64,000 bases of DNA, from the sequence record OR545507.1; one strand, written 5' to 3'. The notes under the pieces are model-generated. The model saw nothing but the letters and a program-made list of their open reading frames with translations, was not told the origin of the DNA and made no database searches. This document shows positions 1-63,567 of this stretch, piece by piece (positions within the stretch are counted from its first letter, which is position 1; each line of letters opens with the position of its first letter). A program made the position numbers and the translations under genes.

Positions 1-56
1 TATCCTCCATAGATATATTACATTCGTATAAAGTATGATATTATTTAGTACTGAAT

Positions 57-95
57 AAAATCGCCTTTTTTAAAAGCTTTAAAAAGTGCGATTTT
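57..95 (-). terminator. 39-bp near-perfect palindrome just past the stop of the 75-aa ORF; probable terminator or cruciform
   Basis: AAAATCGC (57-64) pairs with GCGATTTT (88-95); inner arms 66-74/78-86 pair around a 3-nt loop, with one mismatch and one G-T. Confidence 0.45.
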
Positions 96-99
96 CGGT

Positions 100-327
100 T
101 TACATTAACCCAGAACCGTCACCTGTTGGTGCAGCGGCATAAACAACTGCAACCACATTTTTGCGGCGTTGTTCTTCATGTGCTTTAAATTCACGGTACT
201 TTCTTAAGTTGTTTAATACTTGTAATGTTAGTTTCGGTTTTCTGGAATCAGTAATTTTATATACGTTCTGATCATCTTCAGGGTCGTACATTGAATCACT
301 GCTAGATTCAAAGATGTCCTTTAACAT
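100..327 (-). CDS. small hypothetical protein downstream of portal (possible prohead core component)
   Basis: 75-aa ORF with GGAG RBS and late promoter CATAAATA (392-399); sits where T4 has gp67/68; I-F-E near the N-terminus. Confidence 0.55.
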   Translation of the reverse strand: MLKDIFESSSDSMYDPEDDQNVYKITDSRKPKLTLQVLNNLRKYREFKAHEEQRRKNVVAVVYAAAPTGDGSGLM

Positions 328-391
328 TTGATCTCCTTGAAATATGCATTATAAATGAGGGTAAAAATAAACCCTCATTCTTATACATTGT

Positions 392-399
392 TATTTATG
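392..399 (-). promoter_or_regulatory. T4-type late promoter (CATAAATA)
   Basis: 7/8 match to TATAAATA at the portal stop, upstream of the 75-aa ORF. Confidence 0.55.
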
Positions 400-400
400 T

Positions 401-2140
401 TTAAAAAGAATTGCCTAAATTATTAGGGTCGAAACCACCACTTCCACTCTGTTGCTCTTGGTATTCGGCATCAGCACTTTCCAAATTACCTTCTCCATCA
501 ATACCAAGATCCATTCCAGGATCATTTGGAGCATCAATACCAACAGACTGCAATCCTGCGGAATCTTCTTCACCACCAGAAGGTTGGGAACCATCTTGTG
601 GATTCTCTTGTAACCACATTTGTTCATTCTTAACAATATCAGCTTTAGAAAAGCCCATTTTTTCAAGAATTGTTTGTTTTGCCATATAAGGCAAGTCATT
701 AAGAGGAAGATATGTATTAATTAGTTTAGCATCTAGTTCAGCTTTACGATAAGAAGCTAAGTTAATAGGTGGATTCATAATAACTTCAAAAGATGAAGTA
801 CTAATGTTATATCCATTTTTAACCATAAATCTTTTGAATTCAGCATCAAAATGTTTTGCAACTAAACGTTGATAACGCATACATTGATTATTGAATCGCA
901 ATTCACTTGCCATAGCTTGTGTAGCACCATCACCAAATAATGAAACACCACCATCATCTGGACCTTGTGGTAGATATGAAGCTGGTATTTGAAGACCACG
1001 AATCAATTTATTATTGAAATAACGTAAGTCATCAATTTGTCCTAAGTTATCACCGCCTGGTAATGTTTGAACATCTGAACCACGACCTTCAGAAGTTTGT
1101 GGGAAAAAGTAGTCTTCTAAAATGCTTAATGGATTATACGCTGCATCCATTAGTGAAGTACTTCCACCTTTGTTTGAAGGTATTCTACGCTGGTGGATTT
1201 CATTTTTAAATCTTTCAACATAAGCCATCGCTTGGTGTGCTTGCATATCACCAACATCAATTTTAAATACACGACGCTCAGGTGCACGTTGTACACGATA
1301 AATTATGATACTATCTTCCAGAAGTTCTTTTTGCTTATAGACTTTAAATACGTCCTCAAGTATACTAGTACCAAAAGGCCATACCCCATCTTGTCCTGTA
1401 TTTAGTGTTAGATGAATTACGTGTTCTGCACCAACAGGAATAACGTCTAATTGACCGTTAGTACTGAATGGGTCAGCCGTATTTCCTTGACTTGTAAAAC
1501 CAGATGCACCACCAGCAGCTACTGAACCACCACCACCCATTGTTGTTGGAATAGCTCCTGGATAAGCGGTTTTATCAAATCCTACTTGAAGGTTACTAAA
1601 AACTTTATCTTTCAAATTTAATGATACGTCACGTATATAATAAATTACTGGTGTTTTACCAGTGGCTTCGTTAACAAATACTTGCTCAACATTTTTGGGA
1701 CTTACCCAATACCAATCGAATGTTTCTGGATCTCGAATGAAAAATTGATCACCATATTTCAGAAGACCACGCACAATTTCATACATTCGTGTTTTAAAAT
1801 CATTTTGTTCAGTCCATGCATCTAAACGATCTTCAATAGTCGTTACTTCAGTATCACCAATATCATCTTTATATTTGATTTTATATGGTAAACCAAAATC
1901 TTCAGTACTTTGAGTACAAAAGTCAGCAATTATATTCAATGCAGTTCTAATTTCAGGATCTTGGTCCATTTGCTCATACTGACTATAACGCTCAGTACGA
2001 TTTGCCAATCCATTATATACAACAGGAAGATAGGAAGCGAAATTTGTTTTCGTTCCTGTTGATTTATTGCTATTACTGGACTGATTTGGGATGGTCGATA
2101 GTTTAGACCTTCCCACTGTCATATGTCGTTTCCAACTCAT
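401..2140 (-). CDS. gp20: portal protein (T4 gp20 family)
   Basis: Hallmark LEDSIIIYRVQRAPERRVFKIDVG, LEDYFFP..SEGRGSDVQTLPGG and FNNKLIRGLQIP motifs; acidic C-terminal tail. Confidence 0.95.
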   Translation of the reverse strand: MSWKRHMTVGRSKLSTIPNQSSNSNKSTGTKTNFASYLPVVYNGLANRTERYSQYEQMDQDPEIRTALNIIADFCTQSTEDFGLPYKIKYKDDIGDTEVTTIEDRLDAWTEQNDFKTRMYEIVRGLLKYGDQFFIRDPETFDWYWVSPKNVEQVFVNEATGKTPVIYYIRDVSLNLKDKVFSNLQVGFDKTAYPGAIPTTMGGGGSVAAGGASGFTSQGNTADPFSTNGQLDVIPVGAEHVIHLTLNTGQDGVWPFGTSILEDVFKVYKQKELLEDSIIIYRVQRAPERRVFKIDVGDMQAHQAMAYVERFKNEIHQRRIPSNKGGSTSLMDAAYNPLSILEDYFFPQTSEGRGSDVQTLPGGDNLGQIDDLRYFNNKLIRGLQIPASYLPQGPDDGGVSLFGDGATQAMASELRFNNQCMRYQRLVAKHFDAEFKRFMVKNGYNISTSSFEVIMNPPINLASYRKAELDAKLINTYLPLNDLPYMAKQTILEKMGFSKADIVKNEQMWLQENPQDGSQPSGGEEDSAGLQSVGIDAPNDPGMDLGIDGEGNLESADAEYQEQQSGSGGFDPNNLGNSF

Positions 2141-2151
2141 TATTTTCGTCC

Positions 2152-61430: not shown

Positions 61431-61443
61431 GTGTTGATTCTCC

Positions 61444-61986
61444 TTAAGAAAGCATACGTAACAGTTGGTCGCGTTGCTCTGGACTTAATTTTTGTAGAGC
61501 ATCAGGGATACTGGAACCTTGTGCTTTTGGTTGTTCTTGTTGTGCTGGTTGCTCAGTTGAGGTCGATTGTGATGGTTGTGATTCTGAACTTTCTTCGCCA
61601 CCTTGTTGGTCACGGTAGTCATTCATTATATCACGAGCAGCATTTAATAGAGCAGTACCTACATCTTTTGGTGTAAAAGAACGACGAGGATTGTTCCCTA
61701 AATGTTTAATATCAAGATTGTTACCTTTAAAAAACTGTGCCACATCAGCGTAAGGTACTGATGGTTGAGCTTTACCATATTTACGTCCAACATAACGTTT
61801 AAACTCTGCCCATAAGCGGTTGGCTTCAGCACCAACTTCTTGTGCACCTTGTTCAATCTGTCCACTACCAAAAAAGCCTTTTACTTTTCCTTTTGCACTA
61901 TCAACTGCACTTTGTGAACGACTATAAGGACGAGCTTCATTTAACTCATTGTCTTCATAATCTAACATTTCATTAAGTATACTCAT
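61444..61986 (-). CDS. hypothetical protein (possible head-internal)
   Basis: 180 aa starting MSILNEMLDYEDNELNEAR. Confidence 0.7.
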   Translation of the reverse strand: MSILNEMLDYEDNELNEARPYSRSQSAVDSAKGKVKGFFGSGQIEQGAQEVGAEANRLWAEFKRYVGRKYGKAQPSVPYADVAQFFKGNNLDIKHLGNNPRRSFTPKDVGTALLNAARDIMNDYRDQQGGEESSESQPSQSTSTEQPAQQEQPKAQGSSIPDALQKLSPEQRDQLLRMLS

Positions 61987-61989
61987 GTG

Positions 61990-62526
61990 TTAATCCTTTT
62001 TACCAAAACCAGCACTCATATATTGAGAGTATTTATTGTCTTTTTTCGATGCTTCAATTGCATCATCAACGGCAGTGTTTGCACGTTGTTGTCCAGCTAA
62101 GTCATAACTGTCTTCTGGTTTACCAAAATCCACTCCAATAACTGGTTCATCAACATCATCAAAATCGATATCATCTTCCAAATCAGTCATTTCAATTTGA
62201 CGAGGTTCATCTTTACTACGAACACGAATCAATGCTTCTGTCATGCTTAGTAAATTGCCAATTTCATACATTAGTACATTTGATTGAACGCCACGATGAC
62301 ATTTAAAGTCAAACATCCAAATTTCACCACAATCTAATTCATAGAAATCTAATGGTTTTTCCATAAAAATTGTTTTCTTTAGTGCTCCAATTTCAAACGC
62401 ATCATAGCGATCCATTAGTCGCTGGGTTACTTTACTAAGTTGCTCAGGTGTTGGTTCAACTGCAAACTTAACTCGGTATTCATAAACTGGTTTCTTTTCA
62501 GTTAGGATTTGTTGTAATCTATTCAT
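61990..62526 (-). CDS. hypothetical protein
   Basis: 178 aa, GGAG RBS, late promoter AATAAATA at 62555-62562. Confidence 0.7.
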   Translation of the reverse strand: MNRLQQILTEKKPVYEYRVKFAVEPTPEQLSKVTQRLMDRYDAFEIGALKKTIFMEKPLDFYELDCGEIWMFDFKCHRGVQSNVLMYEIGNLLSMTEALIRVRSKDEPRQIEMTDLEDDIDFDDVDEPVIGVDFGKPEDSYDLAGQQRANTAVDDAIEASKKDNKYSQYMSAGFGKKD

Positions 62527-62553
62527 TTTAATAACTCCATAAGGTCGTTTAAG

Positions 62554-63108
62554 TTATTTATTTCTGTTCATTGATGCAAGCATTTCATTGCGGGTTTTGT
62601 GAACTACGGTTTGCCCTTCAATTGCATCTGGGTCACCAACAGACTCAAGTTCTTTTTTTGGTTTCAAATTTAGTTCAATTTCCATTTTGTCTTTTTTAAG
62701 TTGGAGATCAACTAATTTAACATCTGAATCAATTATTTTTGCATGAGCATCAAGAGCTATTTTTAGCATAGAGTTTGCAGCATTAATCATCTCTGCTGCA
62801 AAACGATCTTCACAATTAAATGCTCTATCAAAAATATCCTCAAACTTTCGTTCTGCCATTTGTGCTAAACGATCCAATTGGGTTTTTCTTGCAGTAATAT
62901 CAGGTAATTCCCTCAACTGTACACGCATTGCTTTGAGCTTTTCCATTGCAATCTTTGCATCTTCCAATGATATTTCAGTTTCAGTTTTGTCTTCATCCTG
63001 ATACAAATCCATTTCTGTATCTTCTTCTGGTTCTTGACCAGTCATTTCAATCCATTGTTGAGCACTAGGTAATCCCAGTGCTTCGTCTATTTGTGGTTTA
63101 GATTTCAT
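62554..63108 (-). CDS. probable terminase small subunit (gp16-like)
   Basis: Helical-hairpin core [17 protein letters not shown]...[10 protein letters not shown]...KLVDLQLKK and terminal TRNEMLASM parallel the T4-family gp16 layout. Confidence 0.5.
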
Positions 63109-63138
63109 TTTTTGTATAGATTCCTTTCTGTTATAATT

Positions 63139-63567
63139 TTAAACTCCAATCCGGTTATTTTTACAAAATTCCATTGCATAAGCCCATTTGGATTGGTTTA
63201 TAGCAACTGCAATTTTTTCTTTTTTGGATTTAGCCAACTCCATGTGGCATTGTTTGTATGGCTTGACTTCTAGTACTTGAGCATGTTGCTTACCATCAGC
63301 ACCAATATATAGTACATAAAAATCAGGCCAGTACTGGTGGACTTGTCCATCTATTGGACTAACATAAGGAATACTAAACGGCTCAATACTCCATTCTATG
63401 ACTGCTGGATTATTATCCAATGAAATCATTATGTCCTTTTCCCATGAACTACGGTATATTGGTTGATTATTACTTTTATACTTTTTAATGTTTTTTATAG
63501 GAAAGATACCTTGAGCTTGCTTAGTATTTGTTATCTTTGCTGGGTTAAATTGTTGATTGAAAGCCAT
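63139..63567 (-). CDS. gp4: head completion nuclease (TnsA-like PD-(D/E)xK)
   Basis: [40 protein letters not shown]. Confidence 0.9.

Follow-up and report, generated by a model that had tools for sequence, protein, structure and literature searches.

Why would a virus fill its genome with copies of a six-base palindrome? This question is raised by a stretch of 64,000 nucleotides from sequence record OR545507.1 (hereafter, the window), in which the hexamer AGTACT recurs throughout. Phages are a textbook case of palindrome avoidance, whereas a whole clade of very large phages does the opposite for this one word. The window is 100% identical to bases 170,371-234,370 of the record of Escherichia phage vB_EcoM_G17 (MK327931.1; G17), an Asteriusvirus belonging to the RaK2/121Q/PBECO4-like jumbo myoviruses, whose relation to T4 is distant. 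It covers a structural module with genes for the portal, the baseplate, a 10 kb virion protein, the tail fibre and head completion, along with gp46/47-like nucleases, endonuclease VII, a gp55-like late sigma factor (10052-10891) and thymidylate synthase. An earlier note on the window took T4 and gp46/47 as its frame of reference; the gp46/47-like genes are indeed present, but the phage is RaK2-like and its kinship to T4 is loose. Our analysis leads us to propose, with a probability of roughly one half, that AGTACT is a selected double-stranded word read by a probably dimeric protein, operator-like at early promoters and dispersed over the whole chromosome.

AGTACT occurs 115 times in the window (1.8 per kb), against 19.7 ± 4.5 in 100 dinucleotide-preserving shuffles, of which the richest contained 32. 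This amounts to a 5.8-fold enrichment, stronger than the roughly five-fold excess claimed in the earlier note. The counts given there were also accurate, since at least 38 sites had been claimed for the first 20 kb, where there are exactly 38, and about 15 for the long fibre gene, where we counted 16. Its coordinates were right except for 59284, where the 8-mer CAGTACTG begins; the hexamer inside it starts one base later, at 59285. The sites fall in 33 of the 45 annotated coding sequences of the window, in both gene orientations and in all three frames, and also in intergenic DNA, all as had been described.

This excess is specific to the word. Under the dinucleotide model, no hexamer of the window has a higher observed/expected ratio than AGTACT (5.9-fold). 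Among the 16 words of the form NGTACN it alone is strongly raised: AGTACC/GGTACT stands at 2.65x and TGTACA at 0.59x, and GGTACC and CGTACG are absent. Equal enrichment of all NGTACN words, which the earlier note had named as the outcome that would undo its reading, is thus not what we find, and a general bias towards GTAC or NGTACN is rejected, as the sister words are not raised alike. The maximal-order Markov ratio for AGTACT in the window is just 1.21, because the pentamers AGTAC and GTACT already carry the excess; this ratio locates the signal and does not explain it.

We compared the 109 coding sites of the window with a null in which synonymous codons are permuted within each gene, so that proteins and per-gene codon usage are unchanged. 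Under this null, 30.8 ± 4.6 sites are expected (z 16.9; a 3.5-fold excess). By frame, 72 sites read AGT-ACT, 12 xAG-TAC-Txx and 25 xxA-GTA-CTx, against 23.2, 1.2 and 6.4 expected. Whole-codon permutation within the window genes gives 28.2 sites. The dipeptide Ser-Thr is hardly in excess (138 vs 122), and 52% of the Ser-Thr pairs in the window are spelled AGT-ACT, compared with 17% expected. When all window hexamers are ranked against the synonymous null, CAGTAC/GTACTG (z 16.2) and AGTACT (z 15.8) come first, and the next word, at z 8.9, overlaps them. Hence the excess stays when amino acids and codon usage are kept; its disappearance was the other outcome that the earlier note had regarded as decisive against a selected signal.

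The same holds for the whole genome, for which we used our own calls of open reading frames (583 frames, 90% coding). A total of 743 coding sites were found against 214 under the synonymous null (z 46.6), and AGTACT with its extension CAGTAC heads the list of 2,080 hexamers, the next word standing at z 17. The coding observed/expected ratio lies between 2.7 and 3.7 in each of six genome regions (z 5-24), with an excess in every frame. A dicodon-preserving null fixes the in-frame AGT-ACT count by construction and is informative for the out-of-frame readings. For these, a codon-pair model expects 6.6 and 13.0 sites in the window, where 12 and 25 are seen, and 80 and 119 in the genome, where 146 and 228 are seen, leaving an excess of about two-fold. 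Meanwhile, the 33.8 kb of non-coding G17 DNA contains 156 sites against 10.4 expected, an enrichment of about 15-fold. Within the window, the 2.8 kb of non-coding DNA has six sites in it or at its edge, five of which are wholly non-coding, against 0.57 expected. These counts show that the word appears at any place the proteins permit, whatever the frame or gene orientation, and is denser still between genes.

The G17 record of 370,817 bp includes a direct terminal repeat of 20,668 bp, and the unique genome of 350,149 bp contains 902 AGTACT (2.58 per kb), against about 100 expected under an order-1 model. Density follows a gradient, from 5-6.5 per kb in the first 30 kb of the genome, which comprise the terminal repeat and tiny early-type genes, to 1-2 per kb in the replication and structural modules; the window is therefore among the poorer regions. 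The densest part is the terminal repeat itself (record positions 1-20,668 and 350,150-370,817, the two copies being identical), with 132 sites or 6.4 per kb. It is crowded with tiny genes, each with a near-consensus sigma-70 promoter before it and a terminator after it. The one 40 kb sample of E. coli chromosome that served for host comparison contained 4 sites (0.10 per kb), as its composition predicts, so that the phage carries about 26 times as many sites per kb as the sampled host DNA.

The distribution of the word among related phages was assessed in syntenic stretches of 42-50 kb each. AGTACT reaches 1.8-2.7 per kb in BF17 and EJP2 (both filed under Asteriusvirus), RaK2 (Alcyoneusvirus), GAP32 and XbC2 (Mimasvirus) and pEa_SNUABM_12 (Eneladusvirus). 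In these six relatives from four genera it ranks first or second of the 2,080 hexamers under the synonymous null (z 10-17), and it also ranks first in CBB (Mimasvirus), with 77 copies in 30 kb. In contrast, AGTACT is found once in 32 kb of syntenic sequence from Pseudomonas phage MIJ3 (Wroclawvirus, same GC content), four times in 41 kb of T4 and once in 30 kb of Agrobacterium phage Atu_ph07. In all three, at similar GC content, AGTACT lies near the bottom of the hexamer ranking. The word is thus depleted in the related Wroclawvirus and Polybotosvirus, and in T4.

Conservation and turnover of the sites were measured in codon alignments of nine orthologous genes from seven genomes. BF17, at 83% nucleotide identity, has 62% of the G17 sites at the matching alignment column, and genomes that are 63-69% identical have 25-31% of them. 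The corresponding figures are 34% and 12-16% for all hexamers, and 31% and 10-12% for hexamers of the same composition, which puts the conservation of AGTACT sites at 2 to 2.5 times that of control words. Other spellings of in-frame Ser-Thr pairs are kept in 0-4% of cases in the distant genomes. There is also extensive turnover, as 147 of 242 site columns are private to one genome, and at conserved Ser-Thr columns each lineage uses AGTACT in 55-80% of cases, with joint use near independence. One-mismatch neighbours of the word are not drained, their observed/expected ratios being 0.63-1.45 genome-wide and 0.87 for the transition neighbours AATACT/AGTATT. Collectively, conservation and turnover look like persistent pressure at every permissive position combined with purifying selection on existing sites, and unlike a repair process feeding on particular neighbour words.

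The positive selection for a genome-wide DNA-level signal that the earlier note had proposed is therefore well supported: the excess over the synonymous null occurs in every frame, is larger in non-coding DNA and is present in four genera but not in the outgroups, and the sites are conserved above control words. In the literature searched, we found no report of AGTACT abundance in these phages, and a comparative paper on jumbo phages held nothing relevant on this clade.

The shape of the word provided insights into what may read it. In G17, the flanks of AGTACT are mirror-symmetric, with C at -1 in 41-47% and G at +1 in 43-49% of sites, and with G at -1 and C at +1 each rare (about 5% of sites). 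The 5′ side is T-rich and the 3′ side A-rich, and the mirrored flanks are seen in both coding and non-coding DNA, with a modest asymmetry in coding DNA. The genome-wide fold over the synonymous null grows with length, from 3.5x for the hexamer to 9.6x for CAGTACTG (157 vs 16.4) and 12x for TCAGTACTGA (32 vs 2.6). AGTACT is thus the core of a longer, degenerate and mirror-symmetric word, roughly T-C-AGTACT-G-A. Such a graded dyad of 10-14 bp is suggestive of a dimeric DNA-binding protein, of which it is typical, and less so of a six-base restriction or modification enzyme. Of the three mechanisms offered in the earlier note (a site for a nucleoid or packaging protein, a methyltransferase mark and a Chi-like signal), the anatomy of the word suggests that a binding site for a DNA-binding protein may come closest. 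The spacing of the sites is Poisson-like (coefficient of variation 1.09), and only a promoter pair at 20-21 bp stands out, so that regular spacing or helical phasing is rejected.

This promoter pair belongs to a recurring design. Non-coding G17 sites precede the next start codon by a median of 66 nt, and those of the terminal repeat sit in sigma-70-type promoters that read, on the gene strand, TTGACA-N9/10-AGTACT-g-TATAAT. Here and below, TATAAT as the -10 hexamer, the E. coli Chi octamer, the LexA box and the assignment of restriction enzymes to sites (ScaI to AGTACT) were taken in their usual forms. A second promoter form reads A-tract-AGTACTTGCA-N16-TATAAT, and a third contains both AGTACT copies together, 20 bp apart; TTGACAGTACT also occurs. 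These promoters often carry a further AGTACT copy about 23 bp upstream.

In G17 and RaK2 alike, copies are fused to TTGACA/TTGCA (-35) and placed directly before TATAAT (-10), and they follow the strand of the genes. The early region of RaK2, which belongs to a different genus, lies at 222-245 kb and carries 5-10 AGTACT per kb with the same promoter design, in which AGTAC and TTGACA are joined and AGTACT-g-TATAAT lies 20 bp further downstream. In RaK2 this arrangement is strand-specific with the genes (15 vs 3, and 19 vs 0), and 20 bp is the dominant short spacing of sites in both phages. These observations show that AGTACT is a fixed building block of sigma-70-type early promoters. The published promoters of the clade are an RpoD-like early type with UP-like elements and an ATAAATA late motif, and AGTACT was not described among them (PMC5259590). 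The motifs TTGACA and TATAAATA as used here were confirmed in the same source (PMC5259590).

Based on these findings, we postulate that the word is recognised by a sequence-specific and probably dimeric protein, produced by these phages or on their behalf. The two copies at early promoters would be operators that overlap the contact points of RNA polymerase, and their occupancy would control early transcription, in the simplest case by shutting it off. With hundreds of copies dispersed over it, the whole chromosome would be open to binding by the same putative reader, and binding on this scale may mark or organise phage DNA. Copies that overlap the -35 and -10 contact points at a distance of two helical turns are a classical operator layout, and repressor operators that overlap these elements form a general class that is normally confined to few promoters. 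The phage sites resemble them in their 10-14 bp dyad, their graded flanks, the two copies two helical turns apart and their retention between genera, and differ in that more than 80% of the AGTACT copies are inside genes across 350 kb.

Several points weigh against this reading. The reader is a postulated protein, and its binding is deduced from the sequence. A methyltransferase or restriction-type enzyme would also be a symmetric reader of duplex DNA, and the anatomy of the word alone does not separate a regulator from the writer of a mark. Outside promoters, the Poisson-like placement of the sites lacks the regularity or phasing that would suggest cooperative arrays, and flank symmetry is imperfect in coding DNA. 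The promoter cassettes within one genome are paralogous, and their fixed placement may partly reflect duplication, yet the design recurs in a second genus. Finally, a strand-specific block free of ACT in the same genome, described below, shows that some reader here works on single strands or on RNA.

Known binding proteins were considered as readers. The SlmA-binding sequence (SBS) of E. coli, GTGAGTACTCAC, is a palindrome with an identical central AGTACT and is bound at many dispersed sites by a dimeric host protein (PMC3020112). SlmA needs G, T and a purine directly 5′ of the core, mirrored on the 3′ side (PMC3020112), unlike the phage sites, which prefer T-n-C 5′ of the core and avoid G. 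There are zero full matches to the SlmA site in the genome and 20 of 1,804 half-sites are compatible, so that SlmA sites are rejected. SBS sites presumably number in the tens per cell genome, as opposed to 2.6 AGTACT per kb. A resemblance to the LexA box, judged by eye, was also rejected, as the half-sites are in the wrong order and at the wrong spacing.

The main rival to a binding protein is a methylation mark, which we consider distinctly less probable. AGTACT, or GTAC, would be the target of a phage DNA methyltransferase or other base modifier, and its abundance would carry the mark, be it as a self signal, as protection or as a methylation-sensitive switch of early promoters. This would parallel HIP1, the highly iterated palindrome (HIP) of cyanobacteria, and its orphan methyltransferases; enzymes specific for HIP1, for the alternate HIPs or for the cores of these words are found together with them (PMC4390886). 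The G17 genome encodes two DNA methyltransferases, and RaK2 DNA is reportedly cut only by methylation-insensitive enzymes (PMC3622015). The position of sites over the -35 and -10 elements would favour control of the promoters by methylation, and an enzyme that is dimeric or acts on two strands would suit a palindrome with symmetric flanks.

Neither of the two methyltransferases, however, can be assigned as the writer of AGTACT. The first is a C5 methyltransferase (PF00145, 286 aa; record 91,405-92,265, minus strand) that is most like Dnmt3 catalytic domains (E 2e-23); after these eukaryotic CpG methylases, its next nearest are M.HhaI and M.HaeIII. It is a short enzyme, CpG-type by likeness, and AGTACT is without CpG. 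A predicted Dnmt3-like activity fits the methylated CpG that has been reported for RaK2 (PMC3622015). The second enzyme belongs to the phage Dam family (PF05869). In addition, type II enzymes are rarely graded over 10-14 bp, yet the enrichment of the phage word rises from hexamer to decamer. As a ScaI-type restriction-modification target the hexamer would be the same, but AGTACT is enriched, the opposite of the avoidance seen for GCGC, CTGCAG, CAGCTG, CCATGG and GGTACC. In the literature, we found no methylome data for the clade and, for the phages as well as their hosts, no ScaI-type system and no digest data; the "ScaI" of the RaK2 paper is a culture medium.

A different kind of reader is indicated by the largest AGTACT-free gap of the genome, which spans 7.7 kb (record 334,742-342,464, outside the window) where random placement gives 3.2 ± 0.5 kb. 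At record positions of about 334,980-342,300 (7.3 kb), about 18 consecutive minus-strand genes form an island with zero sense-strand ACT in any frame, against about 135 expected. AGT is at its normal level there, the boundaries are sharp, and ACT occurs elsewhere at 20 per kb. This is the most extreme word-free run of the genome, with a Gumbel score of 139 compared with 16 for the next. The island is intact in Ecwhy_1 (a run of 7,839 nt at 77% identity) and leaky in ph0011, and the 50 kb of RaK2 that were scanned contain no second one. It is the only AGTACT desert; the ban rules the word out, since ACT is present in both strands of AGTACT.

Within the island, the nearest word allowed on the sense strand takes the place of AGTACT. 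This surrogate, AGTACA, occurs 39 times against 13.2 expected (z 8.2), in all three frames and with C at -1 retained, and reaches 5.6 per kb compared with 0.72 per kb elsewhere. The island of Ecwhy_1 holds 43 AGTACA copies, and in ph0011, with its relaxed ban, full AGTACT accounts for 6 of the 21 ACT on the sense strand. The enrichment of the surrogate therefore indicates that the word pressure is chromosome-wide and separable from the strand-specific ACT rule. Avoidance of ACA is the known logic by which mRNAs escape MazF, and by analogy we infer that the island mRNAs may avoid ACU as a protection against an endoribonuclease that cuts there. One enterobacterial MazF is known to cut U^ACU (PMC10864209).

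It is improbable, nonetheless, that AGTACT itself is read on single-stranded DNA or RNA, either as a T4-type primase start or as the context of an ACU-acting ribonuclease. For priming, one cryptic template base plus a five-base primer would make up the six letters, and a palindromic start would work on either strand; the genome has genes for a primase of gp61 type and a helicase of gp41 type. The ACT-free block, kept at 77% identity, implies that a strand-specific ACT reader exists, and AGUACU contains the UACU cut by the enterobacterial enzyme. Such a reader, however, needs neither a palindrome nor mirrored flanks, and the fixed -35/-10 placement does not follow from priming or RNA cleavage. 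ACT is ordinary outside the island, where AGTACT adds little ACU, and inside it the enrichment of AGTACA sets the word pressure apart from the ban.

It is very improbable that the sites are functionless by-products of biased mutation or repair, for instance of methylation-dependent very-short-patch repair that turns near-cognate words into AGTACT. Elhai's model of HIP1 proposes such a process (PMC4390886). The high proportion of private site columns, the near-independent use of AGTACT by two lineages at Ser-Thr columns, and a density that is highest where constraint is lowest, in non-coding DNA and small early genes, are in line with it. The source-sink signature of a Vsr-like process is nevertheless rejected, as no neighbour word is depleted. 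Conservation above that of controls, flank preferences and a length-dependent enrichment that imply a target of 10-14 bp, and fixed promoter positions in two genera also argue against it. No Vsr-like gene was noticed in the annotation, in which no systematic search for one was made.

The Chi-like signal suggested in the earlier note fits poorly and is scarcely probable. Under this explanation, AGTACT would stop a nuclease-helicase (gp46/47-like, RecD-like, Cas4-like or RecBCD), so that site-poor host DNA is degraded and phage DNA spared. The 2.6 sites per kb of the phage against 0.10 per kb in the host sample would allow it, the window has gp46/47-like genes and other parts of the genome have RecD-like and Cas4-like ones, and GCGC, with 0 copies in the phage and 301 in the 40 kb host sample, shows that a sequence-based discrimination of self from host is feasible. 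Chi, KOPS and DNA-uptake sequences resemble AGTACT in being over-represented genome-wide, kept by selection or drive, and in telling self from foreign DNA. However, these words are presumably asymmetric, confined to one strand and oriented with replication, whereas AGTACT is a palindrome with mirrored flanks for which no orientation is possible, and its copies fused to the -35 and -10 elements would be left unexplained. Its density is also 10-20 times that of Chi in E. coli.

An artefact of amino-acid composition, dipeptides (Ser-Thr, Val-Leu, x-Tyr-x), codon usage or codon-pair bias has a negligible probability: about two thirds of the coding sites do read AGT-ACT, AGT, ACT and GTA are favoured codons, the phage has a tRNA-Ser with anticodon ACT cognate to AGT, and the codon-aware null lifts the expectation from 20 to 31, so that the raw 5.8-fold excess is partly codon-driven, but synonymous and codon-order shuffles, the codon-pair expectation and the non-coding counts refute it, as the excess remains with protein and per-gene codon usage fixed (z 17 and z 47 for window and genome), there is a 10-fold and a 4-fold enrichment in the two frames where the word does not form a codon pair, non-coding DNA is enriched more strongly still, Ser-Thr pairs are barely more frequent than expected, and outgroups of equal GC content lack the excess. 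The word, in turn, explains the odd codon usage of these genomes (AGT, ACT, GTA, TAC), and plausibly also the tRNA-Ser. The gene of this tRNA (record 79,693-79,784, minus strand) is part of the phage tRNA cluster, was confirmed by ARAGORN and has an unusual A34. AGT is the top Ser codon of the phage (33.5%), and its use is partly imposed by AGTACT.

Other sequence rules were apparent in the same genomes. GCGC is missing from 350 kb of G17, where about 162-179 copies are expected, and none of the sampled AGTACT-rich relatives has it either. MIJ3 (27), T4 (49) and Atu_ph07 (42) do contain GCGC, as does the E. coli sample, so that its loss follows the same clade boundary as the AGTACT excess. CTGCAG, CAGCTG, CCATGG, GGTACC, CAGCTC/GAGCTG and CTCCTC/GAGGAG are at or near zero in G17, against 30-79 expected. 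The ACT-free island and the absence of GCGC suggest that further sequence-specific nucleic-acid enzymes act in this system. A more speculative possibility, to which we give limited credence, is a purely sequence-based system of self and non-self. In such a system a dimeric reader would time the early promoters and also mark or shield phage DNA during the destruction of host DNA, GCGC would have been purged, and ACU-free genes would escape a ribonuclease.

Among known genomic words, HIP1 (GCGATCGC) and the alternate HIPs of cyanobacteria are the closest in kind to the AGTACT of these phages, which on our reading is a viral counterpart of such iterated palindromes. HIP1 occurs once per 1131 bp in Synechocystis (PMC6604393). 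Both are short, hyper-abundant palindromes found genome-wide at about one per kb in coding and non-coding DNA, both are lineage-specific, and both are conserved beyond background and judged to be under selection (for HIP1, PMC5861425); function is established for neither. Three features of HIPs are thus found in AGTACT, namely genome-wide over-representation, occurrence in all frames and in non-coding DNA, and conservation (25-62% vs 10-34% in controls). As to the cognate methyltransferase of HIPs, the Dnmt3-like CpG-type C5 enzyme and the PF05869 Dam-family enzyme of G17 could at most be candidates. The phage word differs in its carrier, a virus, and in having an AT-rich hexamer core with a degenerate extension instead of a GC-rich octamer. 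It is fixed in early promoters, whereas no gene-regulatory role was found for HIP1 (PMC5861425). AGTACT spacing is Poisson-like at the scale tested, and HIP1 is linked to orphan methyltransferases, with a repair drive proposed (PMC4390886).

The AGTACT signal is statistically as strong as that of any known genomic "architecture" word. The phage system is more tractable than HIP1, with a small genome, defined promoter positions and close outgroups that are without the word; comparative gene content can therefore shortlist the reader or writer. To our knowledge, the function of HIP1 is still unknown after decades. Several phages of the clade have been proposed for therapy or biocontrol, and the approximately 900 ScaI-type sites per genome are of practical relevance for mapping their DNA or testing its modification.

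Within the window, the 115 sites extend from 47 to 63335 in both orientations and were assessed by shuffles, frames and per-gene counts. The extended palindrome CAGTACTG is represented by 28 sites between 3289 and 63336 (the first starting at 3289, the last at 63329), against 1.0 ± 0.9 in dinucleotide shuffles. Intergenic sites occur at 47-52, 3′ of (downstream of) the minus-strand gene 100-327, and at 6301-6306, in the gap 5562-6367 and about 40 nt upstream of the late-promoter-like octamer TATAAATA that precedes the endonuclease VII gene. At 17014-17019, upstream of the lysozyme-domain gene that starts at 17043, the last base of the site is the first base of another TATAAATA octamer. This overlap, AGTACTATAAATA, occurs once in the G17 genome, which has 15 TATAAATA in all; with 1 of the 15 octamers overlapping a site, a link to T4-type late promoters is rejected. 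TAAATA/TATTTA is depleted inside genes (26 vs 97 in the window; 147 vs 501 in the genome, z -20), which is consistent with avoidance of spurious T4-type late promoters that would be read via the gp55-like sigma factor.

An intergenic pair 11 bp apart (18004 and 18015, spanning 18004-18020) lies between a terminator (17950-17967) and the start of a baseplate wedge gene at 18044. A coding pair that is 18 bp apart from start to start (14898-14921) lies in the gp5-like baseplate hub gene, and the per-gene site list contains other pairs at most 40 bp apart at 5182/5215, 32135/32174, 38885/38924 and 46077/46087. The gene of the long tail-fibre proximal subunit (43996-49521, plus strand) carries its 16 sites at 2.9 per kb. 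Sites in this gene recur at distances of 156, 354 and 60 nt (44491/44647, 45001/45157, 46462/46522, 46876/46936), which indicates that their spacings follow internal sequence repeats that carry the site along. The giant virion structural gene (21585-31556, plus strand), one of the nine orthologues of the conservation test, has 19 sites.

At 54984-54989, a site marks the 3′ edge of the minus-strand gene 54989-56413 and adjoins a terminator stem (54956-54976). This gene is one of the few long genes of the window without AGTACT. Record notes liken it to a Zn-dependent hydrolase or HNH endonuclease; its product matches DUF2201_N (putative metallopeptidase) and a VWA-like domain in Pfam, and no HNH domain. 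The window annotation leaves two gene-free stretches, 5562-6367 (about 800 bp) and 57814-58128 (about 315 bp). Against the synonymous null, the Chi octamer is weakly raised in the genome (16 vs 8.6 sense, 6 vs 2.4 antisense), and the enriched window hexamers CACCAG, CCACCA and ACCAGC are sub-words of its complement that largely reflect favoured Gly/Ala codons.

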